From the sequence record phage_1: a DNA stretch of 64,000 nucleotides. One strand, given 5' to 3'. The notes under the pieces are model-generated. The model was not told where the DNA came from. It saw only the letters and a list, made by a program, of their open reading frames with translations, and made no database searches. Position numbers and translations under genes: made by a program. Positions 4,647 through 25,595 of this stretch are shown here, one piece after another (the first letter of the stretch is position 1; each line of letters begins with the position of its first letter).

Positions 4647-5636
4647 ATGGCTTTTACAATTCGTTGGNCGAACAATAACCCTGGGGCTTCGACCGTGAAG
4701 CTGTACCGCGACACCAAACCTCTGGTGCGTACGGCATTACCTGAACCCCTGGCAACGTTCACTAACGGGGAAACTGAGTATACTGACCGAACAGCGATAC
4801 TGGGGACAACGTATTACTACATGACCACTGTGACAGTGGGAAGCCGAACACTGTTCAGTCCGCAGAAATCAATTCTAATTCAGAACCGTCGCGGTATCGG
4901 CATCGTGGCTCCACAGTACGGTGATGACCGCTTTGCGTATTACGGGTACGTGGCGTACGGNGAATTACCTAGNGCGGGNGATTTTCCGCCAGGGTTTGNG
5001 GCCCTTTCTGGATACGACCCAACTGTTAAGCCGGGCTTGATGAAGTTCCAGCTAGACGGTAAAATTCTGTATCTGTTTAGTGGTCTTCGTGTGAACGGCA
5101 ACACGCTGTATAGCCGTGATGCGATTTATAACGCGGGTTTGCTGTACGGTGTGGCGGGACCTGGTCCGGAAGGCGGTCATGGCGATTTACCTGACGTTGA
5201 CCAGGCTGGGGAGTTTACGTGGTTGGGTGACCGCTATCGGATGCGCCTGCTGCGCGGTTTAACACTCGACAGTGAAAGCCCGGTCATGACACTCGATGCA
5301 CAGTGGGACGGTAAACTCCATGACGCGTCACCGTATACTGCCGATAGCGAATACAACCGACTCATCTATGGGATAAGTAGCTGGTTCCCAGAAAAGAAAA
5401 AAGTGATGTCCCTGATAAAGTGGTCGAACTCCAGCATATTTGGAAATGGATNNNTGGTGGCAGGCCGTGGGGCGCATTGTCAGGAGTTTGACCCAGAACN
5501 TAAGTTGGGGCTGACGCGCGGATTGGCGGCGGTGGATTCCACTGATACCGTGGATAACCTCCAGCGTATACAACATGTCCCTGGTGCGACCGTGGGCGGT
5601 ATTTGGATTCCAGTAATCGAGCTTATCGAGGATTAA
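4647..5636 (+). CDS. Virion protein, paralog type B'
   Basis: Colinear similarity to 1193..2191 (FTIRW.N, KLYRD.K..LPEP.AT..NGETE, GP.GGHG.LP, EYN.L.Y). Confidence 0.65.
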   Translation: MAFTIRWXNNNPGASTVKLYRDTKPLVRTALPEPLATFTNGETEYTDRTAILGTTYYYMTTVTVGSRTLFSPQKSILIQNRRGIGIVAPQYGDDRFAYYGYVAYXELPXAXDFPPGFXALSGYDPTVKPGLMKFQLDGKILYLFSGLRVNGNTLYSRDAIYNAGLLYGVAGPGPEGGHGDLPDVDQAGEFTWLGDRYRMRLLRGLTLDSESPVMTLDAQWDGKLHDASPYTADSEYNRLIYGISSWFPEKKKVMSLIKWSNSSIFGNGXXVAGRGAHCQEFDPEXKLGLTRGLAAVDSTDTVDNLQRIQHVPGATVGGIWIPVIELIED

Positions 5637-11775: not shown

Positions 11776-12291
11776 ATGTTTCATCCGAATCCTGCCAACT
11801 TCGCGTTAAAAGAGTTGATGCCGCAGGAGTACATCGCGAAATATGGTGAAGGTGCTATTCGTTTCCTTAATCCGTTACTGCTAATCTCGCTCCAACAGAT
11901 TCGTAATCGTTTTGGGCGGATGGTGATTTTAACCAGTTCCCAGCAACAGCGTAGTCTGCGTACCCTGCAGTTCTTTATTAATCAAGAGAAACCAAAGGGT
12001 GGAGATTGGCAAACTCGTGCAAACAAACTGTACGCCGAATCAGGCAGTATGCATAAATTCGGTAATGCGTTTGATGCAACAATGCTTGATACACCGTTGC
12101 AGAAAGTACACGACTATATTGCCGCGAACCCTAACGAGTTTCCGTTTATTCACTTTATCGAGTGCGATATTACCTGGCTGCATGTTGACGTACGCAACCA
12201 GCCTGATATCACCTTCTGGTCACCGACACGTGGTACCGTTAAAGTGGTTAAGCAACAACCCATCGATTGGAGCAAGCTAGTTAAAATCTAA
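11776..12291 (+). CDS. Peptidase M15-family Zn peptidoglycan peptidase
   Basis: RSL...SMHKFGNAFD...WLHVDVRN Zn-ligand motifs (H..D, H). Confidence 0.75.
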   Translation: MFHPNPANFALKELMPQEYIAKYGEGAIRFLNPLLLISLQQIRNRFGRMVILTSSQQQRSLRTLQFFINQEKPKGGDWQTRANKLYAESGSMHKFGNAFDATMLDTPLQKVHDYIAANPNEFPFIHFIECDITWLHVDVRNQPDITFWSPTRGTVKVVKQQPIDWSKLVKI

Positions 12292-12373: not shown

Positions 12374-12430
12374 AAATAAAGCCCTTACCCACTCCCCTTA
12401 CGGGAGTGGGTAAGCATTATTTATTTTCTT
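12374..12430. terminator. Bidirectional terminator (conserved family copy 1)
   Basis: CTTACCCACTCCC/GGGAGTGGGTAAG stem between convergent genes, A-run 5' and T-run 3'. Confidence 0.8.
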
Positions 12431-12908
12431 CTAACGGAACAATCGTAATCGGAGTAGGAACTTCACCGATAAACCCGCTGCTGCAGCGAAAGAATGTCAT
12501 CCCTTTACCTTCGCCGGTATACGGGTTCACATCCGAAAAAGAATAAGTGGGGCTATCGTTTACGGTTTTATTAATACGGTAATAACGCTCACCTGTGGTG
12601 GTGTTAACATTCCCGTCGATTTTGCCGATCACGTCTTTAAACATCATCGGTGACTCTAGTTTGCCACCGTCCCACGCTGCTACCCAGTTTGCACCCACAT
12701 CCATTACTGTTACTGACCGCGGCATCATTTGTAGGTTGTCCAGTACCGGACGGTAGTCTACAAACTTCTCCTGCGTCCCTGTGCATGTATAAATCACCAA
12801 GTCGTGATTCTTTACTGGTGTGGCGCTAAATTGTCCTATGTTGCTTGGCGACTGAACACAACCGGCCAACAGGTTTATAATCGCGAATACGATAAATAGA
12901 CGTTTCAT
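12417..12908 (-). CDS. Lipoprotein, unknown function
   Basis: MKRLFIVFAIINLLAGC: signal peptide II with LAGC lipobox. Confidence 0.7.
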   Translation of the reverse strand: MKRLFIVFAIINLLAGCVQSPSNIGQFSATPVKNHDLVIYTCTGTQEKFVDYRPVLDNLQMMPRSVTVMDVGANWVAAWDGGKLESPMMFKDVIGKIDGNVNTTTGERYYRINKTVNDSPTYSFSDVNPYTGEGKGMTFFRCSSGFIGEVPTPITIVPLEENK

Positions 12909-13032: not shown

Positions 13033-13581
13033 ATGGCAGTCATCTCTGCAAAAGACCAACTCGTCGCGCTGTTTAATGCTGCAAACAGCGGACTGTCTAG
13101 TCCGTTAACTACTGCTGACGTTACATTCGGCGCTGTTGCTGACTATTCACCAGCAGATTCTGGAGACACTCGCAACTCCAAACTCACCATCACTGCCACC
13201 GCGGAATCCGCTAACTTTACGGGCGAGAAAGAGCTGCACTATACCCGCCTCGATTCATTGAACATCATCGGTGCGAAAGCAGTTACCGCTGACCAGGCAG
13301 AATGGGATACCGATGAAGAAGTGCTTGCTTTTGTCAACGCAGATCTAATTGCCGCCGGTAAAACGGAAGATGCGTTTGCATTGTCTGAACTCACCATTTC
13401 ACGCGAGGACGGCGACAGTGGTGAGAAAATCATCACTGTTATGGTGAAAGAAGGCCACATTAAATACCAGCCTGCCAGCCTTGCAGTTTATACTGTAACG
13501 CAGCCAATCGTTAAAACTGACCTGAGCACCACCAACGGTGAACTAGACGGATTCGTTTCACAAAACAACGTTAGTATGTAA
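13033..13581 (+). CDS. Virion structural protein, NGELDGF family
   Basis: RNSKLTIT....NFTGEKELHYTRL family domain; TTNGELDGF near C-terminus. Confidence 0.65.
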   Translation: MAVISAKDQLVALFNAANSGLSSPLTTADVTFGAVADYSPADSGDTRNSKLTITATAESANFTGEKELHYTRLDSLNIIGAKAVTADQAEWDTDEEVLAFVNADLIAAGKTEDAFALSELTISREDGDSGEKIITVMVKEGHIKYQPASLAVYTVTQPIVKTDLSTTNGELDGFVSQNNVSM

Positions 13582-13605: not shown

Positions 13606-13660
13606 AATAAATAAAAGGTACCTACCTCCCTTCGGGGAGGTAGGGCCTTTATTTTCTTTG
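13606..13660. terminator. Bidirectional terminator (family copy 2); ends the long minus-strand tail/rSAM run
   Basis: CCTACCTCCC-TTCG-GGGAGGTAGG flanked by A- and T-runs. Confidence 0.8.
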
Positions 13661-13661
13661 C

Positions 13662-14333
13662 TTACATGCCGAGTGACTCGGACAATGTTTTTAATCCGGT
13701 GTAATCGCGCTTTTCAGCTAACTCACGGATTTGGCGTTTGTTATCTGCCATTGCTGAGTGCAACACTTGGTCACGTGCAACAATAGCGGCCAGCAACGCT
13801 TTACATTGGGCTACTGTAAACGGACTGTGCTTAGTATTCAGCGTATCGAGCCAGTATTCTGGTGCGGTATCTGCCTGAATGTATTGACCGAGGATGGTAC
13901 GCGACGATTCATCGGCTTGAAAGTGACTACCTTCAAACTCGATATAACCATGGCGCTCATCTTCGTAGCGGTGGTCGAGTTCCAACAGCATCTTCTGCAC
14001 GTCTTCGTAAATGTAACGTGCGGTAGATTTCAGATTCCCGCGAATTTCGTCGAGGTCAATCTCCAGCACATTAGCAATAAACTCTTTCGTGCGTTTCAAT
14101 GTGAAGTTAGCTTCAATCTCCGACATCTCATACAGCTTCATGCGTGCCAGGGCTTCTTTATCAGACATCCCTTCGATGAGATGGTAATGGAGTAATGCAC
14201 AAAATCCGGTACGACCCTGATCCTGCGCACCGATTCGTTCCATGAAATTACCGTGACGATCAATCGGCAAATCACGCTGGAAATAACNGGCGCGGATCTC
14301 TTCGTTCGTTAAGCTTTTGTCAGTAACAGACAT
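13662..14333 (-). CDS. DUF4376-like tail-fibre assembly protein with N-terminal extension
   Basis: C-half FQADESSRTIL....YWLDTLN..PFTVAQCKALLAAI..RDQ.LH fits the DUF4376 pattern. Confidence 0.65.
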   Translation of the reverse strand: MSVTDKSLTNEEIRAXYFQRDLPIDRHGNFMERIGAQDQGRTGFCALLHYHLIEGMSDKEALARMKLYEMSEIEANFTLKRTKEFIANVLEIDLDEIRGNLKSTARYIYEDVQKMLLELDHRYEDERHGYIEFEGSHFQADESSRTILGQYIQADTAPEYWLDTLNTKHSPFTVAQCKALLAAIVARDQVLHSAMADNKRQIRELAEKRDYTGLKTLSESLGM

Positions 14334-14875
14334 TCGTCCTCCTCAATCAGGCCAAGTTCTAACAACAAACCGAAGTCCAGCATCTGGAAGTCCTGATCGA
14401 GGTTACCGGCCCACAACAGAGAAATGTTGTGTTGCTCTTCTTCTTCCAACTGCGGGAGCAGGTGTTCTTCGAAGATTTGACGTTCTGTGTAATAAGCGTC
14501 AACCGGGTTATTGGAGCGTAAGTTACGAATACGCATCCGCGGGAATGACAAGCCCAATGCCACTAAACTTTCAGGACTGGCTTCATCAATAGAGTGACGT
14601 AGCAGTTCGATTTTGTGGCGTGGGTATGCAAGCAGTCGCTTCTCAAAGCCAGGGTTGCGCTTTTCGATTTCCGCGACAGACTCGTGTCCTTTCTCAACGC
14701 AGTAGACCGGGATCATCACATTCAGCCCGTATTTAATCAACAGGCTTTGGATTTCATCAGTGAAGTCTTCCCCTGCCACAATTGCGTGCACATTGTACAG
14801 CTTGCTTTTGCGCAGGAAGCGATCGACCAAGTGCAGTTTACGCTTCGTAAAATTGTGAATCAGTATTGACTTCAT
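14309..14875 (-). CDS. Hypothetical protein of the rSAM cluster (188 aa)
   Basis: GGAG SD before ATG 14875 (MKSILIHNF); overlaps both neighbours. Confidence 0.6.
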   Translation of the reverse strand: MKSILIHNFTKRKLHLVDRFLRKSKLYNVHAIVAGEDFTDEIQSLLIKYGLNVMIPVYCVEKGHESVAEIEKRNPGFEKRLLAYPRHKIELLRHSIDEASPESLVALGLSFPRMRIRNLRSNNPVDAYYTERQIFEEHLLPQLEEEEQHNISLLWAGNLDQDFQMLDFGLLLELGLIEEDECLLLTKA

Positions 14876-16166
14876 TCTGGGCTCCGTTTTGTAATTTTTC
14901 TGCTTCGGCACGTTGGCGTACACAACGTGAACAATAGCACATGGATTTATCATGCAAATCTGATGCGCGAGTCGTACCAGTTTTCTGATACCAATATTCC
15001 GCCGCCATCAGCTTCGCAGTAGTCCAACCACACTGACGACGCTCGGCGTGATACGCTTTACGGTCTTCCAGTGTACCTTCACCGTTTTCGTACGATGCTG
15101 CTGCGCAGCTACCGCAGCTGTGTTTCATCGGACACCCTAAACAAGTTTCTGGGTAGTTGGTGTACTGCGTTTGAATCTCTTCTAACAGCTTACCGCCGTC
15201 CAGGCTCACAAACTCACGACCGACCAGTTCCGCTACAGCAGAGCGGGAAGTTACCGTGGACATGAAACGGTTACAACCGTAAATCTTGCGATCAAAGCCG
15301 AGACAGGTCATGTGCGTCAACGTACCGCAGTACGGTTTCAGGCGTTCTGGGTCGAGACGAACAGAGTCGTCATGTAAGAGTTTGTCACGCCAATCCGGGT
15401 CCCAAGTTGCCATAAAGTTCAGGCCATCCGGGATGATGTGCGTAATCGTGTTACGCGGGTTGGTGTGCAGACCCTTCTCAATCCAGTAGTCCATCACGTC
15501 CATCATCTGGTTCGCGATATCCAACGCCATATGGCGCGGCAGGATATCTTCGTACGTCACGTTACCAGAAATGGTACCACCGCCGGACATGTCAATTAAC
15601 GATTTCATGCTGGCGGCATAGTGCGGCAATGTATCGATCGTAAACGTCGCCTTTACGCCCAGTTCAGCGATGCCAACACTCTTCAGATAATTGTAACCGC
15701 GTACCGCAGCTTCGTACGACCCTTCACGCGTCGTGGTAAAGATACGATATTTGTCATGGACTTCAGGTAAACCATCGATGGAGACCCCAATAGACAGTTT
15801 GTCTTTCCAGCGCTCGATAATTTCTTTGTTCAGCGGACGGTCCAGAAGCGTACCGTTCGTGGAGATACTGAACATATACGGGCGATTGTGTTCTGCGCAT
15901 AACTTCTCTGCGGTTTCAAAGGCCGCCAAAAGAAGTTTAGGCTGCATGAACGGCTCACCACCGATGATATCGATGATGACTTCAACGTTCGGGATATCTT
16001 TATCACGCTCGAAACAAGCGTGGATAAAATCAATCACGTCTGCTACTTTGTTGTTACGCGGATATTTACGCTCGTAGCAGTATTCGCAGTCCAGGTTACA
16101 TGACAAGTTAGTCACAACCTGATACGTGCGTGGTGTGTACTGGATTTGCTGTTCGTTATTACTCAT
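14838..16166 (-). CDS. Radical SAM/SPASM peptide maturase
   Basis: CNLDCEYCYE (CxxxCxxC), IGGEP, SISTNGTLL, SIDGLPEVHDKYR; C-terminal CG..H.TC..YGCNRF..CLGCPMKHSCGSCAA..QC auxiliary-cluster Cys. Confidence 0.9.
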   Translation of the reverse strand: MSNNEQQIQYTPRTYQVVTNLSCNLDCEYCYERKYPRNNKVADVIDFIHACFERDKDIPNVEVIIDIIGGEPFMQPKLLLAAFETAEKLCAEHNRPYMFSISTNGTLLDRPLNKEIIERWKDKLSIGVSIDGLPEVHDKYRIFTTTREGSYEAAVRGYNYLKSVGIAELGVKATFTIDTLPHYAASMKSLIDMSGGGTISGNVTYEDILPRHMALDIANQMMDVMDYWIEKGLHTNPRNTITHIIPDGLNFMATWDPDWRDKLLHDDSVRLDPERLKPYCGTLTHMTCLGFDRKIYGCNRFMSTVTSRSAVAELVGREFVSLDGGKLLEEIQTQYTNYPETCLGCPMKHSCGSCAAASYENGEGTLEDRKAYHAERRQCGWTTAKLMAAEYWYQKTGTTRASDLHDKSMCYCSRCVRQRAEAEKLQNGAQNEVNTDSQFYEA

Positions 16167-17073
16167 TGTTCGCCGCCCGTTTACGCTTAGCAGAAATTAC
16201 ACGGTTGATGTAGTTATACGCATCAACGCCGATAGAACGCGCCAGGCGATTACAGCCGACTTCCAATATCTCTGGGGCGTTCTGAATTTGCTCCTGCGTA
16301 CCGTCGGCGTTAAGCCACAGCACTTCACTGCACGTGTTGCACTCGGTATCGAACATTTTACTGATCGCAAGCCCACATTCAGAATCGTTCTGCATGTTAA
16401 GGCGTTCGATATTGTCGAGTATTTTCCAATACCCGTACATGAAGTTCATGACGTGGTCTGGCGATAACGGTTTCGGCATCATCGCATCAAACAACAACGA
16501 CACACCACCTGGACGGTAATGATAGATTGCTCGGTGCAGCTCGATGAAATCTTCGTACCAGCGTTTATCGCCTAACTGGTCACGCGTCATCACACCCCAG
16601 GTGTAATAATTGTCCAGCTCGTACAGCACTTCCAGCGCTTCGTGATTACCACCGTTTACAAAGTTCATAAACGGACGTTCCGACTTCTTGTAGCCGTCAA
16701 TGGACACAAAGATAAGGTCGAACTGTTTCAGCAACGGCAGATGTGATTTACGCATCTTTAAACCGTTGGTGTACATGTGATGACGGAGGTTCGGATGAGA
16801 CTCCTTCAACTCGTTCACGAAGTCTTCAATCTTACGCTGCGCTAACAGCGGCTCACCGCCCGTCCAATGAATCTCACCGATATCCGGATTCTTCTCTAAA
16901 ATCGAGAGAATCTCTTCACGTTGAAACTCACGAGAAGTATCTTCTCTATCCATGTAATAAGCCCCTCCACAGAAGCTACAGTCTAAGTTACACTTAGAAG
17001 TTGCGACAACCGACAGAATTGACGGTTTGTCGTACAGTTCAGACGAGATCCTGGATTCTACTTGATCTGTCAT
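16159..17073 (-). CDS. Second radical SAM protein (short, reduced C-terminal Cys domain)
   Basis: CNLDCSFCGG, WTGGEPLL, YTNGL, VSIDG; C-term CNTC...GCNR. Confidence 0.85.
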   Translation of the reverse strand: MTDQVESRISSELYDKPSILSVVATSKCNLDCSFCGGAYYMDREDTSREFQREEILSILEKNPDIGEIHWTGGEPLLAQRKIEDFVNELKESHPNLRHHMYTNGLKMRKSHLPLLKQFDLIFVSIDGYKKSERPFMNFVNGGNHEALEVLYELDNYYTWGVMTRDQLGDKRWYEDFIELHRAIYHYRPGGVSLLFDAMMPKPLSPDHVMNFMYGYWKILDNIERLNMQNDSECGLAISKMFDTECNTCSEVLWLNADGTQEQIQNAPEILEVGCNRLARSIGVDAYNYINRVISAKRKRAANNE

Positions 17074-17094
17074 TGCAGGTTGCTCCAGTATTTT

Positions 17095-17982
17095 TTAAAT
17101 ATAATCAATGGCGAATAAAGGATCTTCGTCTACGTTAGCGCCAGGCACCAGTAACATCGGGTCGTGATAGGCAGCTAAAATTTTGTTCAGGTCGGCGTGT
17201 CTTTCGTTCAGACGTTTCAAATCGGCCAACGTTACCGAACGACCACGAATCTCAGAAACAGCTTCTGCTTCTTCTTTCGTTAAATCCACCTTCGTTAAGA
17301 GGAAACTTACCAGCTTACTCAAATCCGCTTCTGTCGCCGGGTAATCCCCATATCGGGTTTGAACCAGGTGTTGCATCCACGGCTTACGAATACGTTTGGT
17401 GATTTCAAAATCGTCAGTCAGCGCATACCAGACAGAACGCTTTTTATCCCACACGAACTTATAGCTATACGCCATCATGTCCGCTAAACGGGTGATGCCG
17501 AGTTCTTTATACCCCTCGATATCGATGTATGGTTCGGTGTCGAAATACGTTTCCGTATCGGCAGGTACCAGTACAAAGTAGTAAGGGAACGAGCCCAGAT
17601 AGTCCGGACTCCACCAACGGCGCGCCATCGGTTTTGCTTCAAGTTCGTCAAACGGTGTAAACATCAGTTCTAAATCGACGCTGTTGTTCAAAATCCCTTC
17701 GCTGAAGAAATACTTACCGTCGACTAACACGCCACGAGAGTTACCATCGCCGTTAAAGATAACGATGGCCTCTGCAACCATATCACGGATCTTAAACGTA
17801 TTTTCTACGGTGTAGTTCTTCTTGTCGGTCAAGAAGCGACCACGAACCTTTGGCCACTCACCAGGAATCTGTGCAATCAGTCTGACTTTGTCAGCAAGGT
17901 GCGCACGCACTGAATCTGGGGAAGATAGATGCAGCGGGTGGTTGAATGTGGTTTTATACGCAAGATGCAAATCGTTTTTCAT
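17095..17982 (-). CDS. Hypothetical protein of the rSAM cluster (295 aa)
   Basis: Long clean ORF with SD between peptide genes and rSAM genes. Confidence 0.65.
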   Translation of the reverse strand: MKNDLHLAYKTTFNHPLHLSSPDSVRAHLADKVRLIAQIPGEWPKVRGRFLTDKKNYTVENTFKIRDMVAEAIVIFNGDGNSRGVLVDGKYFFSEGILNNSVDLELMFTPFDELEAKPMARRWWSPDYLGSFPYYFVLVPADTETYFDTEPYIDIEGYKELGITRLADMMAYSYKFVWDKKRSVWYALTDDFEITKRIRKPWMQHLVQTRYGDYPATEADLSKLVSFLLTKVDLTKEEAEAVSEIRGRSVTLADLKRLNERHADLNKILAAYHDPMLLVPGANVDEDPLFAIDYI

Positions 17983-18004
17983 TTAATACTCCGAACGTTT
18001 TCTG

Positions 18005-18211
18005 TTATCGATTCCCCGCTCCACGGCTACAGCTTCCGCTGCAGGACCAGCTACACCCACCATTACAGTTATAGTGAGAAAGCGGTAAGCCAGCCAGGTT
18101 ATTTGTGGTCGACACGGTGCCCTGGTTAGCGATATAGTTGTTTGCCTGTGCGGTTGTAATGTAACCTTCTACCGTAACGAGACGGTTTCGAATAGTCTTG
18201 AGACTGATCAT
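18005..18211 (-). CDS. Cys-rich precursor-like peptide 3 (68 aa, 4 Cys)
   Basis: Leader ISLKTIRNRL..; core SHYNCNGGCSWSCSGSCS; GGAGG SD. Confidence 0.8.
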   Translation of the reverse strand: MISLKTIRNRLVTVEGYITTAQANNYIANQGTVSTTNNLAGLPLSHYNCNGGCSWSCSGSCSRGAGNR

Positions 18212-18226
18212 ATAAGCCTCCGTCAG

Positions 18227-18631
18227 TTAGGAGTTAGGACCTGAACAACCACCAGAACACGCGCCGGAGCAGTTTGCGGAACAGGATTTGCCACAGCCGC
18301 CAGAGCAGTTACCAGTACACGTTCCGCTACAACCACCAGAACATGAAGAGCTGCAACCCGTACAGCTGCTGCTACAGCCCGATACACAGTTTGCGGAACA
18401 AGTCGACCCACAACCACCCGTAGCAGACCCAGTACACCCGCCAGAACAACTCGAGCAACTAAAAGAGCATGTGCCACCACAGTCATAGTGCGAACGGCCT
18501 TGACCTGCGAACAAGTCGGCGTTATTCGTAGCTTTATTGCGAATGTAGTTTTGCACATTCGTGGTGTTCTTTAAAGCGTTTGCATCGATCGTGTTTAATC
18601 GGTTATTCAGTTCTTTTAATCCAATTGCCAT
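18227..18631 (-). CDS. Cys-rich CxxxC-repeat precursor-like peptide 2 (134 aa, 20 Cys)
   Basis: Leader IGLKELNNRL..; core SHYDCGGTCSFSCSSC(SGGC..)n. Confidence 0.85.
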   Translation of the reverse strand: MAIGLKELNNRLNTIDANALKNTTNVQNYIRNKATNNADLFAGQGRSHYDCGGTCSFSCSSCSGGCTGSATGGCGSTCSANCVSGCSSSCTGCSSSCSGGCSGTCTGNCSGGCGKSCSANCSGACSGGCSGPNS

Positions 18632-18641
18632 TTAATCCCCC

Positions 18642-19034
18642 TTAGCGACCTGAACAGCCGCCGGNGCAGGCCCCGGNGCAGTTTGCGGAANAGNAGCCNC
18701 CNCAACCNNCTGAAAAGTTACCGGTACAGCTACTACTGCAACCACCAGAACAACCAGAGCAACCAGAACAGTTACCGCCACACGTCGAAGAACAGCTACC
18801 GATACAAGAAGCAGAACAGCTTCCTGAACAGCTCGAACAGCCATGCGAGCAACCGTTAGAGCANGTCCAAGAACATGTCCCGCCGCAATCTAGCTGTGCT
18901 TTCGTCCAACCCCCAAATCGGTCTGCTGCATTATGGGCTTTAGAGGCCACTTGCGCCTCGATGCGGGGGCCTGTCGCCATGTTAGCTTCGACNATCTGGA
19001 CGCGGTTTCTGACGTCTTTAATAGATATCGCCAT
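18642..19034 (-). CDS. Cys-rich CxxxC-repeat precursor-like peptide 1 (130 aa, at least 18 Cys)
   Basis: Leader ISIKDVRNRV..; core LDCGGTCSW.CSNGC..; some N bases. Confidence 0.85.
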   Translation of the reverse strand: MAISIKDVRNRVQXVEANMATGPRIEAQVASKAHNAADRFGGWTKAQLDCGGTCSWXCSNGCSHGCSSCSGSCSASCIGSCSSTCGGNCSGCSGCSGGCSSSCTGNFSXGXXGXXSANCXGACXGGCSGR

Positions 19035-20349: not shown

Positions 20350-23300
20350 TTAGGTACGGAACATAAGATTGACCTGGATAATATCAGGCTGTTGACGTCC
20401 TCTCTCGTTCACCCAATCGTGTGCAATCGTTAACGTAAGATCATCGCCTTCCCACGACACGATCGGTGGTGGGAATAAACCCTGAGCGCCCGTGGTAACA
20501 ACCGGGATTGCACCTGCCACATTCGTAAACGTATAGCTACGACTGTTCAGAACAACCGGTGTGCCGTGGGTCTCTCCCGGCTGTGGTAAGATTTGAATCT
20601 TACTATCCGAAAGATCGGTGGTGATTGGTAGACCCCCAGCGTCCGTGAAAAGCCAAGAGCAAATATNCTGGTTNGCTGTTTCGAGCGCTGAAGAACTCTT
20701 CACAGCCGCGAAAGTAAAGGTGCACGGCACGCCTGCTGGCAGAGAGTGCTGTTTGTGGTGCACGGTATGTGGTGACGGCAATAACACTTCTGGATTTTCG
20801 TCAATGTTAACATCCGTACCTTCCGCCTCGACGTTGTAGAAAAAGCCATCCACCGCCTCCCATGGGGCAACGTGGACATTAAAGGTCGTTTCTACTCCCG
20901 GTGTACCTGGGACGACGAATTTACTTTGCACCACCACCATCATAGTTCTTGAGGTCGGTGAGAAAGCGGGCGTTGGAATACCTACCCACTCCATTCCCAA
21001 CGATGCCGCTTCACCGTTCTCATCAGCCGTTACCGTCGCGATTGTTGTAGGATGTTTCCAAAACGCCCCCGACTTGTTTGCCTGAGTAAACGCCGGCAAA
21101 GTTTTCAAGCCTTCGAAACGTTTGGACACCATCGCTTTACCGCGACGCTGTGCGTCAGATACGGTATAAAGCAACTGACTATCCAGATAGCCTTTCGTAG
21201 CATCGATCGACAAAGGACCCATCGCTTCTTTACGCAATGGTGCCAGTCTGCCCGTTGCTGCATCCCTTCCCACTTCCACATCATGCTTATTCTCAACCGC
21301 CGCATGTTCCAACAGTTGTTTCACCGCCCCCAATCGCTTAGCATGTTCGACGTTAGTCTCGACGACTCGTGACGAGCCCGTTTTAACATACCCGATATAG
21401 AGTTCCGTTTCAGTGTCTGGATGTTGAATCACGTCCATTACGTACTTCGGTGTACCATTTTCTACCTTGGCGTGCAGGTAGAATGTCCGGTTCTGATGGT
21501 TTGTTGGAAATGCTGCGCTGAGGTCAATATACCACGTAGGCAGCTTATAAGTGCTCGAGCCGAAACGCAGGTCAACTTCCTCAGTCACATATACCAGCCA
21601 ACCTTCGGCTGTTTCCACNCCAGCAATGACGACCGATTCAGTCGGGCCACTAAAATTAGGAGCCGCGACAAAATCACTCGACGACATTGCGATACCACCA
21701 CAATAGACGTAGTCGAGAGATGAGTTGTGTAGCATCACCTGATCACGATGAGCCAGATAAGCTGGGCTGACTGGAGTGTGTGATGGTGCCATGCGTCCAA
21801 TGCCGTGTGGAGCAGAAGAACGCGTCCAGGTACCATTAGACAGCGTAAGACCAACACCGTAGTTAAGCGCACCCAAGTCGCCAATTTGGCGCAAGGTTAA
21901 CGTGTGTGGAAGATACAACCCGAACTGCGTACCATCTACTGACACCAGTGTAGGTTGTCCCGGCCGGCGTGTTTTTCCTCCCGTTATCTCACCCAACGTA
22001 GCATAGTTCAAGCCATAGTCGAGGTTGTTATAGAAGTCAAACAATGCCAATATCGCTGCCGGGAATGTTACCTGCCCGTTACTGATTGTTGGTTTCAGTG
22101 TAAAGTAGTAGATATCCAACAAGTTAACATTGTTCACAGTACGCGTACATGCTACTTGTGCTAACGTGAGCGGTGTGGCCGTACCAATGCCGATGAACCA
22201 AATGGAGAACAGTGCCTTTCCGGCGTTATTTGCGGCAAGGATAAATTCCGAAGCATAACCATTCGCAGCGCCAGCCGGTGCGCCGTCGATAATCATCTGC
22301 TTCATCTTATCCCATTCGGCTTGTGACAGCGTCAACCGATCGGCATGAATCGTGAAAGTGCCAGAAACGTTGTGGTAAGGGAATGTTTCTGGTCCTGTGC
22401 AATACCAGCCGTTTAACTCTGTACCAGGCGACGCCGGTGTAACAATGTGGCACATCTGCGACAGATTCTCGTACGTGGTAGAATCTACTACACGACGATT
22501 GTTAGTTGGTCCATACCCCGCTTTACCTGAATAAGTGGTGTTCGGATCAAACTCAACTTCAATTGCCAAACGGGTACGCGGCTGTGACAACCAGATAAGT
22601 CTGGAATTCGCTCCCAGAGTCAGCGGATACGCCATGCCCAGCTCGTAGATAGAACCACGACCTTGGTTTAACATTACCGCACTAAAACTTCTGGCAGTGA
22701 AGTTGTAGTCGCACGACAGGTACTCGTACCAACTCACACCGTCATCTAACGTTGTAATCGTGACATAAGGCATTAGGTCGCGATCGCCTGCATGTCCTTG
22801 CGAAACGATATACTTGTCTTGCGATGTTGCAAAGGTTCGGTTATTAGCTTGACCTTCGCCCCATTTCCGGCTCGGAATCCCAATCTCAGCGCCACCGTTA
22901 TAACGAACCGTGGTAAGATCGGCCACAATAGGGAATCGATCAGCACCTTCCAGCGTTATCGTCATTGAACTACAATCAACAACAAAGCTTGACACCCATT
23001 GTTTAAAGTTAATAGTTTGCCCTGTAGTAGAAGCAAACCAAACCGTTGGAGTTAAACCAACACGAAAGTTCAGCCCATCCACACCAATCGCGTGATTACA
23101 TTCCGGACCATGGACAAATTTCGTCGCACTATTCCACTTCGCCGATGCGTCTGCGTAGATTTGTGTTACTGGCGCTACCAACACATCTGTATCAGAACGN
23201 TTCTGACCCTGACGCAAGTAGATATTATCTCCCGACGTTAACATCCCACCTGTTAACACATCCGCCACAAACGTGTTGCTACCACCCAGATTAAGTTCGT

Positions 23301-25533
23301 CGAGTGCGATGCTACGCATACTCACGAAATAGTCACCGGAGGTAAGCACAGTACGGAGCAGATAAACCCGCTCGTTGCAAACGATCAAATCGTTTGTTGA
23401 TGGATCAACAACCCATGGAGCGGTTGTAACTGACACCGGCCCGTTACCATTTCGGTAATCGCCCAACTGAACTTTAACAACACGATGATGTTTTGCATGG
23501 TCAATGGTGCCGTCAAAGATGACCAGGTAGTACGCACCGTCACTGCCTAAGCAGATCATTGCATCTGTACCGGTAATCACAATAGCAACCAGATTCACCC
23601 CAGGATACGCCGACATTCCAGCGGGTCGATAACGTACGGACGTCTGCTGCATATTTTCCAGCGTATTGCTTGGCGACACATCAGCATAGGCGTAATAGAT
23701 AGCCCAGTCACCTGGTGGATTCCCGTTAGAACCATTACGGAGCGAGTAAACCTTACCAGACTCGTAACGCGCCAAACCTTTCTGCCAGGTTTGGTTTTTG
23801 GTATACCCTTCGTAGTTCCCCTGGACAGGTATAGGCAAGAAGTTATTGTTGCCGTACGATGATCCGCCGACAGTCCATGCGGGCAACAGCGTAGCAATCT
23901 TGTCATTCAGTGTGTCAATCTTTTGTTCAAGCAAGAAGCCCTGACGCGAAGTGACCATCTTATCCGAGGTAGTGTCGATTGCATCCCACAGTTTAGCCAA
24001 ACCTGTAACAGACGTGGATGCGTACGGCACGTTATCGAGATCTGCAATGGTGTGGGTGTGCGTTGTAAGCGCTTTGCCTGATAGCACGGTGCGCAACGCA
24101 TTAGTAACCGGTTTCTCCAGCGGCCCGGTATTGTTCATCTTCTCAATACCGAAATCTGCCGCGGTTAAGGTCAGATGCATCTGCCCGTTTGAATCTAATA
24201 CAAACCCTTTACCATTGACTGTATACGTGTCGTCCACATATCCGTCGAGTTTGTTCTTCAAGTCAGTAACAGCTTTTTGGGAAATCGCTGTGGANGCCGC
24301 AGCGGACGCCGAAAGGTTAGTAATCGCAAACAAACCCTGCACAGTTGTGGTTGCTGCAGGCAGCTCCGCATTCATGTAAACTTTGTTTGTTTCTTTACCA
24401 GAGCCGTAAATCTTCAACGTGTCGCTGGACTTGAAGTAGGCGTTTGCTGGAAGTATCTTCACCGAGGTCAAGTACATCTTAACCATATCCGGTGTAACGA
24501 GATACACGCTGTTATACACAGGTGCAAGCACACCTGCATCATAAGCGCCCCACTTGTCACCTGCTTTACCCGAGTGAACCCAAAGCGTGTTCAGACCAGC
24601 ACTGAACTCCGTAGCGATACCCGGTTCGTTGTTATCCCGGTCAGCTTTTAATACCAGCGGTTTTGTCGAGGTGATAATGAACTTCTCACCCTTCATGCTG
24701 ATAACGTGACCAGACGTTGTTTGGAACGTAATCGCGTCGTTATTCAGAACACGCATACGGCCCAGTAAATCGCCCAGGGTATTATCCAGAAGCATGTCAA
24801 CGTGTTTCTGTTGGATGCCACTGGTAGACATTAACGTCACTAACTCTGCCAGTGTACGTCCAAACGCTTTAGTCGCATCCACGGCCTTACCGAGCACAGG
24901 GAGTGCGCCAATGTCACCGCAGGTGTAACCATGTGCATTTTTAATCAGGTGGTGTTGATACATTTCGTCATCAAACACCTGTTTACCGTTCTGATAAATC
25001 AAATCGGTAACTTCGGCAAATGCCTCATCCAGTTCGTGGGCGCGCTCTAAAATACCCAGACGGATATCTTCCAACGCCTTTACGATTTCATCGCGAAGAA
25101 TCGCTTCTTCGAGATCTTTTGGCGGGTCGATTGGCGAGATAATCGGTGGATATTTCATCAGCTCAGACCAATCGCAGTTGCGCGGGTCTTTCATATCCGT
25201 CTTAACCAGATACTTGCCGATTTCAGAAGCAGGGATGCGGTACTGTCGACCAACCGACAACAACTCGTATTCTACCTCTGTGGCGTTCAGCAGCATTATG
25301 CTGCCGTATATTGCATCGTTCTCAGCCTCGGCTAATTCCTGGAAGTAATGTCCTAAGAAATAATCAAGACCTTCTATTAACTTGCGTTTGGTTCCGGTTA
25401 TTTTATCGGTAACGGTTAACGTTAACCCGATGCGATAGAACGGTGCTTCGACGGGAATGACCGTCGAATAACGGTTCGGGTAAGTAGCGGTACTGAGGGT
25501 ACCGTTAAACTGCGCCGCATCTTCTCTCGGCAT
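20350..25533 (-). CDS. Giant tail fibre / baseplate-attached protein (about 1727 aa)
   Basis: H..KNAHG.T motif, ATTTVQGL and ASTSVTGL fibre repeats, LTAADFGIEKMNNT..KPV motif; AGGAG SD before ATG 25533. Confidence 0.7.
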   Translation of the reverse strand: MPREDAAQFNGTLSTATYPNRYSTVIPVEAPFYRIGLTLTVTDKITGTKRKLIEGLDYFLGHYFQELAEAENDAIYGSIMLLNATEVEYELLSVGRQYRIPASEIGKYLVKTDMKDPRNCDWSELMKYPPIISPIDPPKDLEEAILRDEIVKALEDIRLGILERAHELDEAFAEVTDLIYQNGKQVFDDEMYQHHLIKNAHGYTCGDIGALPVLGKAVDATKAFGRTLAELVTLMSTSGIQQKHVDMLLDNTLGDLLGRMRVLNNDAITFQTTSGHVISMKGEKFIITSTKPLVLKADRDNNEPGIATEFSAGLNTLWVHSGKAGDKWGAYDAGVLAPVYNSVYLVTPDMVKMYLTSVKILPANAYFKSSDTLKIYGSGKETNKVYMNAELPAATTTVQGLFAITNLSASAAXSTAISQKAVTDLKNKLDGYVDDTYTVNGKGFVLDSNGQMHLTLTAADFGIEKMNNTGPLEKPVTNALRTVLSGKALTTHTHTIADLDNVPYASTSVTGLAKLWDAIDTTSDKMVTSRQGFLLEQKIDTLNDKIATLLPAWTVGGSSYGNNNFLPIPVQGNYEGYTKNQTWQKGLARYESGKVYSLRNGSNGNPPGDWAIYYAYADVSPSNTLENMQQTSVRYRPAGMSAYPGVNLVAIVITGTDAMICLGSDGAYYLVIFDGTIDHAKHHRVVKVQLGDYRNGNGPVSVTTAPWVVDPSTNDLIVCNERVYLLRTVLTSGDYFVSMRSIALDELNLGGSNTFVADVLTGGMLTSGDNIYLRQGQXRSDTDVLVAPVTQIYADASAKWNSATKFVHGPECNHAIGVDGLNFRVGLTPTVWFASTTGQTINFKQWVSSFVVDCSSMTITLEGADRFPIVADLTTVRYNGGAEIGIPSRKWGEGQANNRTFATSQDKYIVSQGHAGDRDLMPYVTITTLDDGVSWYEYLSCDYNFTARSFSAVMLNQGRGSIYELGMAYPLTLGANSRLIWLSQPRTRLAIEVEFDPNTTYSGKAGYGPTNNRRVVDSTTYENLSQMCHIVTPASPGTELNGWYCTGPETFPYHNVSGTFTIHADRLTLSQAEWDKMKQMIIDGAPAGAANGYASEFILAANNAGKALFSIWFIGIGTATPLTLAQVACTRTVNNVNLLDIYYFTLKPTISNGQVTFPAAILALFDFYNNLDYGLNYATLGEITGGKTRRPGQPTLVSVDGTQFGLYLPHTLTLRQIGDLGALNYGVGLTLSNGTWTRSSAPHGIGRMAPSHTPVSPAYLAHRDQVMLHNSSLDYVYCGGIAMSSSDFVAAPNFSGPTESVVIAXVETAEGWLVYVTEEVDLRFGSSTYKLPTWYIDLSAAFPTNHQNRTFYLHAKVENGTPKYVMDVIQHPDTETELYIGYVKTGSSRVVETNVEHAKRLGAVKQLLEHAAVENKHDVEVGRDAATGRLAPLRKEAMGPLSIDATKGYLDSQLLYTVSDAQRRGKAMVSKRFEGLKTLPAFTQANKSGAFWKHPTTIATVTADENGEAASLGMEWVGIPTPAFSPTSRTMMVVVQSKFVVPGTPGVETTFNVHVAPWEAVDGFFYNVEAEGTDVNIDENPEVLLPSPHTVHHKQHSLPAGVPCTFTFAAVKSSSALETXNQXICSWLFTDAGGLPITTDLSDSKIQILPQPGETHGTPVVLNSRSYTFTNVAGAIPVVTTGAQGLFPPPIVSWEGDDLTLTIAHDWVNERGRQQPDIIQVNLMFRT

Positions 25534-25554
25534 TGCAAACACTCCTAATCTGTA

Positions 25555-25595
25555 ATAAAACGGAGACCGCCCTCCCAATAACGGAAGGGCGGTTT
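25555..25595 (-). terminator. Internal terminator/attenuator between two giant fibre genes
   Basis: Imperfect ACCGCC..GGCGGT stem followed by T-run on minus strand. Confidence 0.5.

Follow-up and report, generated by a model that had tools for sequence, protein, structure and literature searches.

A radical SAM gene module of SPN3US-like jumbo phages with a probable role in cross-linking Cys-repeat fibre proteins

A cluster of eight genes at positions 13662-19034 of phage_1, a 64,000-nucleotide stretch of DNA (the window) from a lytic SPN3US-like (Seoulvirus) jumbo phage, probably serves the enzymatic cross-linking of phage fibres and not the production of a free, antibiotic-like peptide. We propose, with a probability of roughly 0.55, that three of these genes, pepA, pepB and pepC, encode small proteins associated with fibres, and that the Cys-repeat tip of these proteins is cross-linked by the pair of radical S-adenosylmethionine (SAM) enzymes encoded alongside them, a reading in which we infer both the chemistry and the location in the virion. 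The pairing of such enzymes with such substrates was already known in the form of uncharacterised NCBIfam and Pfam models; the phage-fibre setting is new, and literature searches found no publication on phage radical SAM/CXXX systems or on tail fibres modified by radical SAM enzymes.

An initial annotation of this DNA had described eight tightly packed, co-oriented genes, including three for Cys-repeat peptides, on a lytic jumbo phage. All eight are present as described, on the minus strand, and the locus is 99.8% identical to that of the SPN3US-like Escherichia phage vB_EcoM_Lh1B and 97.8% identical to that of Salmonella phage SPN3US. The genes, with lengths in amino acids (aa), are as follows.

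18642-19034, minus strand: pepA, 130-aa Cys-repeat protein; N-terminal region (about 49 aa) with a fibre-type junction at its end, then a CXXX core
18227-18631, minus strand: pepB, 134-aa Cys-repeat protein with 20 Cys; junction sequence NNADLFAGQGRSHYDCGGTCSFSC
18005-18211, minus strand: pepC, 68-aa short paralogue with 4 Cys; N-terminal region and junction as in pepA and pepB, minimal core
17095-17982, minus strand: gp165 family (SPN3US gp165), accessory protein, 295 aa; phrog_8030
16159-17073, minus strand: gp164 family, small radical SAM enzyme, 304 aa, motif CNLDCSFC; PF04055
14838-16166, minus strand: gp163 family, radical SAM/SPASM enzyme, 442 aa, motif CNLDCEYC; PF04055
14309-14875, minus strand: gp162 family, 188 aa; phrog_7988
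13662-14333, minus strand: gp161 family, DUF4376 protein, last gene of the unit, 223 aa; PF14301, phrog_8169

The module in unrelated phages

Single-sequence searches with the locus recovered close relatives only, and alignment-based searches were required to reach more distant modules. Distant homologues of gp163 (32-39% identity), when traced to their contigs, again lie beside a second radical SAM gene, a gp165 homologue and a CXXX protein, the exception being a Synergistaceae prophage (L042) in which no separate open reading frame (ORF) for a small radical SAM enzyme was seen. As judged from these sequences, the conserved core of the module is made up of four families, namely a CXXX protein, a gp165-like protein, a small radical SAM enzyme and a SPASM radical SAM enzyme. 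Two variants of the arrangement were observed, with three radical SAM genes in a row in L023 (5306-8134) and two tandem gp165-like genes in L042 (5352-6972).

The positions that the module occupies in these phages, in P2-like, lambda-like, T4-like and T7-fibre contexts, point to tail fibres. In a prophage of Deferribacter abyssi (L020), genes for a 302-aa CXXX protein, a gp165 homologue, a small radical SAM enzyme and a SPASM radical SAM enzyme come after a GpJ-type tail-tip gene; the 302-aa protein contains HxHxxxYYTE fibre repeats and 29 Cys, and ends in KATNADQLGGQAGSYYRCSDCSWTCSSSC. L023 and a Desulfoluna locus (L039) are arranged in the same way, with the CXXX domain C-terminal to HxH fibre repeats, and in L023 the CXXX protein likewise follows a GpJ-type tail-tip gene. 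A 213-kb T4-like contig (L021/L022/L036) encodes, after a T4 gp13-like gene, a fibre-like protein of 568 aa whose C-terminal part contains 30 Cys; a match of this protein to PF27846 (tSAM_targ_Cxxx_rpt) is precomputed, and it passes TIGR04114 with 20.7 bits (cut-off 20). In a P2-like myovirus (L037), Baseplate_J and Tail_P2_I are followed, after three small genes, by a 401-aa CXXX protein with collagen-like repeats, a radical SAM enzyme, a gp165 homologue and a SPASM radical SAM enzyme, with sheath and tube next, an order that places the module in the P2 H/G (fibre/fibre-assembly) slot. In the Synergistaceae prophage, a GpJ-like tip and one small gene precede a CXXX protein of 475 aa with a coiled coil, after which come two gp165 homologues, the SPASM radical SAM enzyme and a GH108 endolysin. 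In two metagenome-assembled genomes of Thalassospiraceae (L040 and L041), a stand-alone CXXX peptide of 76-79 aa (5003-5233 and 5005-5244, respectively) precedes a gp165 homologue and both radical SAM enzymes, and its start overlaps the stop (ATGA) of a gene whose 577-aa product has a T7 tail-fibre N-domain (PF03906); this overlap could represent translational coupling or a split fibre gene.

Fibre-fused CXXX domains are joined to their shafts by a junction motif, N-A-x-x-L-x-G-x5-Y-Y-R-C-x-x-C-S-W-T-C, that is common to all of the fibre-fused versions and to the 'leaders' of the jumbo-phage peptides, where it takes the form N-x-x-x-[LF]-x-G-x5-6-C-x-x-C-S-W/F-x-C (for example NNADLFAGQGRSHYDCGGTCSF). 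The initial annotation had read pepA, pepB and pepC as leader-plus-core precursors of RiPPs (peptides that are made on ribosomes and modified after translation); this has to be revised, as the supposed leader ends in the element that connects fibre shafts to CXXX domains in unrelated phages. Given this junction, and the occurrence of the module in tail-fibre slots elsewhere, the products are more likely to be matured structural, fibre-associated proteins than released peptides. Of the properties expected of a fibre-associated protein, two, a position at tail-fibre genes (here downstream of the virion tail genes gp167-gp170) and sequence features in common with fibre proteins, were found for pepA, pepB and pepC.

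A reverse search, in which a sequence-only profile of junction and core was run against 1.84 billion proteins (E <= 1e-3), matched 601 representative proteins. Among the best 150 of these, the C-x-x-C-S-W-x-C junction is present in 42, and in 97 the repeat lies within 15 residues of the C-terminus. All five junction-type proteins that were looked up are followed by an unknown protein of about 240-320 aa, a small radical SAM enzyme and a larger one; the unknown protein is a gp165 homologue in four of the five loci, the similarity being weak in L045. The neighbours of these loci are phage genes, including those for a tail Collar domain protein, endolysins and an integrase, and precomputed PF27846 matches are found also on the L045, L047 and L050 proteins. 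Giant proteins of 1400-1800 aa (P0164 at L050 6001-11040, and the similar P0165-P0169) were also encountered, with unbroken CXXX tracts of about 600 aa, at least 150 Cys and Flg_new domains; P0164 is separated by about 3.9 kb and one gene from a radical SAM gene that contains an intein, on a phage-like contig of 114 kb.

Closer to the window, the order gp168, gp167, pepA, pepB, pepC, gp165, gp164, gp163, gp162, gp161 is kept in Erskinevirus phiEaH2, in the Derbicusvirus phages CR5 and Phobos, and in Wellingtonvirus. Exactly three leader-bearing ORFs adjoin gp165, gp164 and gp163 in 13 of 13 SPN3US-like loci from four genera, with 21 Cys in pepA, 20-23 in pepB and 2-5 in pepC. The initial annotation had held that absence of the peptides from relatives that keep the radical SAM genes would speak against a modification pathway; they are missing from none of these loci.

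The Cys-repeat proteins

The reading frame that contains the Cys repeat is the real coding frame. Between genera, third-position changes dominate (e.g. 77-92, against 17-45 at positions 1 and 2), 20 of the 20-21 Cys columns are invariant across the four genera, a Shine-Dalgarno site precedes each of the three genes, and all three proteins fall within a single PHROG, phrog_6085 (pepA through its phiEaH2 orthologue). The core is built of C-[S/T]-G-[S/T/G] units, with a Cys interval of 4 in 85% of cases and of 3 in 15%, and consists of 27% Cys within a Gly/Ser/Thr matrix. Tandem Repeats Finder detected only weak repetition in the DNA, indicating that the periodicity of Cys is maintained at the level of the protein. 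For pepA, 18 Cys can be read in this DNA and 21 in the SPN3US copy, which is free of ambiguous (N) bases; the codons of three of the 21 are unreadable here because of N bases inside the gene (at 18694-18749, 18864 and 18993), and the matching GenBank locus (L002) reads alike.

Against TIGR04114 (tSAM_targ_Cxxx repeat; cut-off 20 bits), pepB scores 16.3 and pepC 13.7 bits, and the pepA orthologue gives no match; pepB and pepC also match TIGR04117, below its cut-off. The pepC orthologues in Derbicusvirus (L033-L035) and Wellington (L006) contain only 2-3 Cys and end in SSGGAKAVTWPS; pepC is a conserved paralogue in which N-terminal region and C-x-x-C-S-W junction are retained and the repeat core is almost gone. 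A hidden Markov model of the leader, run against all ORFs of the window, found no further protein with the N-terminal region of pepA, pepB and pepC, and only three proteins were recovered when the pepB leader was used in a word-indexed search for homologues. In public data, most genes of this kind have not been called. In the GenBank record of SPN3US, pepA and pepC are unannotated and gp166 (SPN3US_0166; 18223-18558, minus strand, in the window) is a 111-aa wrong-frame ORF over pepB; several other records annotate nothing over the Cys-repeat genes. Databases built from such records cannot detect the Cys-repeat proteins and, as gene callers routinely miss or mis-frame genes of this kind, proteomic databases are without them.

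The two radical SAM enzymes

Both enzymes belong to the radical SAM group, exceeding the Pfam PF04055 cut-off (29.5 bits) with 58.8 bits for gp164 and 55.6 bits for gp163, and both fall in phrog_1802. The CX3CX2C motif of gp163 is C23/C27/C30, and its complete set of seven SPASM Cys (C280, C298, C342, C345, C351, C354 and C379), a motif that in SPASM enzymes binds two auxiliary [4Fe-4S] clusters, is invariant in 18 homologues; the SPASM assignment rests on this motif and on an alignment to CteB that runs through the SPASM region, PF13186 itself not being reported for gp163. A CX3CX2C motif is likewise present in gp164, together with a GGE motif and three conserved C-terminal Cys of the twitch-like or partial SPASM kind. 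The initial annotation, which had named two radical SAM enzymes, one of SPASM type, was correct in this respect.

The top NCBIfam match of gp163 is TIGR04115 (rSAM_Cxxx_rpt, 'CXXX-repeat target'; 3e-36), with 125.6 bits against a cut-off of 350, and the second-best family is the PapB ranthipeptide maturase (NF047865; 1e-32), with 113.6 bits against a cut-off of 340; a genuine PapB-type enzyme in L043, used as a positive control, reaches 381.8 bits on the latter model. Of the link to TIGR04114 and TIGR04115 that had been suggested earlier, the identification of TIGR04115 as the closest family therefore stands, whereas membership does not, the scores lying below the curated cut-offs. The nearest solved structure is that of the thioether synthase CteB (5WGG/5WHY, E 5.6e-38) and the second nearest that of anSME (2e-18). 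As gp163 starts at the radical SAM motif and its alignment begins only at residue 100 of CteB, past the RiPP recognition element (RRE) of the latter, gp163 lacks an RRE. A defence-system reading was considered and rejected, the PADLOC matches being to the generic viperin-like radical SAM core only.

Accessory proteins and genomic context

Homologues of gp165 occupy the same slot in at least 10 unrelated phage loci. The protein itself has no NCBIfam match and no known domain; its AlphaFold2 model is of high confidence, with a pLDDT (predicted local distance difference test) of 89, and a fold search with this model gave no PDB match (best E 0.23), a match in BFVD to the Asesino orthologue alone, and no match to an RRE. 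The remaining two proteins, gp162 and gp161, are confined to the SPN3US-like clade, and no homologue of gp162 occurs in the distant modules. The mechanically called gp162 ORF extends to 14953, the annotated start (14875) has a Shine-Dalgarno site, and phrog_7988 covers residues 27-213 of the long ORF. The DUF4376 assignment that had been proposed for gp161 holds (PF14301, 38.8 bits against a cut-off of 25), and besides phrog_8169 the protein has a weak link to phrog_2837 'tail protein' (E 8e-4).

The cluster is co-transcribed downstream of the virion tail/fibre genes gp167-gp168, up to a terminator, a hairpin that closes the minus-strand unit just past the DUF4376 gene. The flanking features are as follows.

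20350-25578, minus strand: gp168 family, baseplate/tail-fibre candidate of 1742 aa, upstream of gp167 (PMC5105663, PMC5694885)
19100-20338, minus strand: gp167 family, virion structural protein with a long coiled coil, directly upstream of the cluster
13621-13644, no strand assigned: intrinsic terminator-like hairpin, bidirectional and strong, with a 10-bp stem and 7 GC pairs

Mass spectrometry has detected gp167 in the SPN3US virion (PMC5694885 supplement). The giant fibre proteins gp168-170 were considered as substrates of the radical SAM enzymes and rejected, no Cys-rich region being present in the true frame. On the other side of the hairpin, a gp160 homologue (13033-13581, plus strand) converges on the cluster, the terminator being common to both units; gp160 is reported as a highly abundant head protein, with more than 300 copies (PMC5694885). 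At the position of SPN3US gp159, a 163-aa ORF (12417-12908, minus strand) with a lipoprotein-type signal and lipobox (LLAGC) stands alone between plus-strand genes, and at that of gp158 there is a 171-aa ORF (11776-12291, plus strand). In Phobos, gp159 ('putative peptidase M15A') adjoins a 'tail assembly chaperone' gene; if the 171-aa ORF is its orthologue, a cell-wall hydrolase may belong to the fibre module.

Proposed mechanism

In the mechanism that we propose, pepA, pepB and pepC would each consist of a short helical N-terminal part, the fibre junction and a tip of C-[S/T]-G-x repeats. Late in infection, in the cytoplasm, gp163 would use a 5'-deoxyadenosyl radical to bond repeat Cys to neighbouring residues. 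Thioether (sactionine/ranthionine-type) bridges are the likeliest product, on account of the nearest relatives of gp163 and of the precedent of CrpA/CrpC (discussed below). The small gp164-type enzyme would perform a second step, with the gp165-type protein as obligatory partner, whether in recognition, as a scaffold or as a chaperone. The result would be a compact cross-linked domain, insensitive to redox conditions and resistant to proteases, that would be built into, or docked on, the baseplate/fibre apparatus (gp167-gp170), there contributing to adsorption or to fibre stability. Such a redox-insensitive substitute for disulfides would suit particles that are set free in reducing surroundings, many of the hosts being anaerobes. 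We infer that the CXXX proteins are the substrates, as we do the thioether chemistry, the way in which the enzymes share the work and incorporation into the virion in SPN3US-like phages. In its most general form, which we put forward more tentatively and at slightly less than even odds, the proposal is that of a ladder of thioether-type cross-links installed by radical SAM enzymes at the distal end of fibres by a portable four-gene module, the SPN3US-like phages having three separate mini-fibre subunits; this module would span jumbo, T4-like, P2-like, lambda-like and T7-fibre-bearing phages of anaerobes and enterobacteria.

Several observations weigh against the assignment of pepA, pepB and pepC as cross-linked fibre proteins. 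The virion proteome of SPN3US lists gp160 and gp167-171 and nothing from gp161-166 (PMC5694885). For the Cys-repeat proteins this absence says little, since their genes are missing from the SPN3US annotation; for the enzymes, gp165, gp162 and gp161, it suggests that they are non-virion assembly factors. The jumbo-phage peptides are without a fibre shaft, and could have been co-opted for another role. As gp163 is below the curated cut-off of every characterised family, its chemistry is an extrapolation. On the evidence of its model, gp165 has no recognisable fold, and AlphaFold2 modelling of pepB (27-sequence alignment) gave a pLDDT of only 43, with the N-terminal helices no more than weakly predicted.

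Alternative explanations

Three alternatives share the probability that remains. Whilst unlikely, the one that survives best is a classical RiPP, in which a leader of about 50 aa is removed and the cross-linked core released, to act in the infected cell (in counter-defence, or on metals or redox) or at lysis as an antimicrobial or signal. A common N-terminal region followed by variable Cys cores, beside a radical SAM/SPASM enzyme of the peptide-maturase type, fits this description, as do the stand-alone peptides of L040 and L041, in which the N-terminus is only 14 aa long. However, the combination of an RRE-recognised leader with a protease or exporter, by which a classical RiPP cluster would be recognised, was not found: none of the eight proteins matched a protease, transporter or RRE in Pfam, NCBIfam, PHROG or PADLOC, bearing out the remark in the initial annotation that neither transporter nor leader protease is recognisable. 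Moreover, the 'leader' bears the junction that elsewhere links fibre shaft to CXXX domain, the modules occupy tail-fibre slots, and even the L040 and L041 peptides come directly after a tail-fibre gene. The retention by pepC of N-terminal region and junction with the core almost lost would also be odd for a leader that serves purely to deliver a core.

Less likely again is that the substrates and enzymes are those proposed here, with either a different chemistry (anSME-type conversion of Cys to formylglycine, C-C cross-links or epimerisation) or a role for the CXXX domain as a trimerisation or assembly clamp that is cleaved after assembly. The position of anSME as the second nearest solved structure is consistent with the former, and two different radical SAM enzymes imply two reactions; nevertheless, the CteB-type thioether synthases and PapB score far above anSME. 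Fibre and spike proteins are known to carry C-terminal assembly domains that can be removed; no protease domain is present here.

The least likely of the three is that the Cys-rich proteins bind metals or iron-sulfur clusters, either like metallothioneins or as metal-stapled fibre tips comparable to the His-x-His iron sites of fibre needles, with the Cys remaining thiolates and the radical SAM enzymes using them as cluster donors or modifying something else. Although the high Cys content of the Gly/Ser/Thr-rich core, the presence of HxH repeats in fibre-fused versions and the speculation of the authors of the CrpA/CrpC work that CrpA-like proteins bind metals (PMC13692751) could all be accommodated, the obligatory pairing with a maturase-type radical SAM/SPASM pair and an accessory protein across very different phages is hard to explain unless Cys is the substrate, and the nearest relatives of the enzyme all modify Cys in peptides or proteins.

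Significance

If the cross-linking of fibre-associated proteins proposed here is correct, the receptor-binding organelles of phages can depend on oxygen-sensitive radical chemistry, and a new kind of covalent virion modification would stand alongside cross-links of the HK97 type. A conserved block of 'hypothetical' genes would be explained, both in SPN3US, a widely used giant-phage model, and in many prophages, and the orphan CXXX-repeat radical SAM family would gain a biological role and a genetically tractable system. In practical terms, phage engineering and the heterologous production of fibres would then require maturases and a supply of Fe-S.

Comparison with known systems

One of the closest described systems is that of TIGR04115/TIGR04114, which likewise sets a radical SAM/SPASM enzyme beside proteins with Cys at every fourth residue; it was defined in silico, and we found no experimental paper on it. 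A gut-phage relative (L007) comes close to it, its enzyme reaching 300.6 of the 350 bits required by TIGR04115 and its 193-aa neighbour passing TIGR04114 (21.3 bits). The phage clade lies about equally far from PapB. The phage modules have an obligatory second radical SAM enzyme, a gp165-type protein and a fibre-type junction, features that may set them apart from the TIGR04115/TIGR04114 definition.

CteB (with its SCIFF peptide) and PapB (freyrasin) resemble gp163 in combining a radical SAM core with a seven-Cys SPASM domain, and both use repeated Cys as donors. They differ in that gp163 is without the RRE, that the acceptors here would be Ser, Thr or Gly and not the Asp, Asn or Thr of defined motifs, and that the substrates are fibre-type proteins of 68-570 aa with no genes for export or cleavage. 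In the His-Xaa-Ser system, a substrate with a short-period repeat (HxsA) is encoded with a radical SAM/SPASM enzyme (HxsB), a small radical SAM enzyme (HxsC) and HxsD. The four-part layout is that of the phage module, and gp163 matches HxsB (4e-21) and gp164 HxsC (6e-12); these scores are nonetheless far under the cut-offs, and the phage repeat is based on Cys.

That a radical SAM/SPASM enzyme can place thioether cross-links on a protein, and not just on a peptide, has a precedent in CrpA/CrpC of Methanococcus voltae (TIGR04463), in which they are formed in the C-terminal Cys-repeat region of a protein, the paralogous substrates having an N-terminal region of about 47 aa in common and a third protein improving processing (PMC13692751). 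CrpA/CrpC is a cellular and not a viral system, with an RRE on CrpC and 17-aa repeats with C-x-x-Q/D (PMC13692751), and its radical SAM family is a different one, gp163 matching TIGR04463 at only 7e-16.

Amongst phage proteins, the fibre assembly chaperones (P2 gpG and the Tfa class) hold the same fibre/fibre-assembly slot, in which the present module would act on the distal fibre domain. The isopeptide bonds of the HK97 capsid provide a precedent for virions stabilised by covalent cross-links. With no sequence relationship to either, the module would differ from both in employing an enzymatic radical modification in place of a folding chaperone or an autocatalytic bond.

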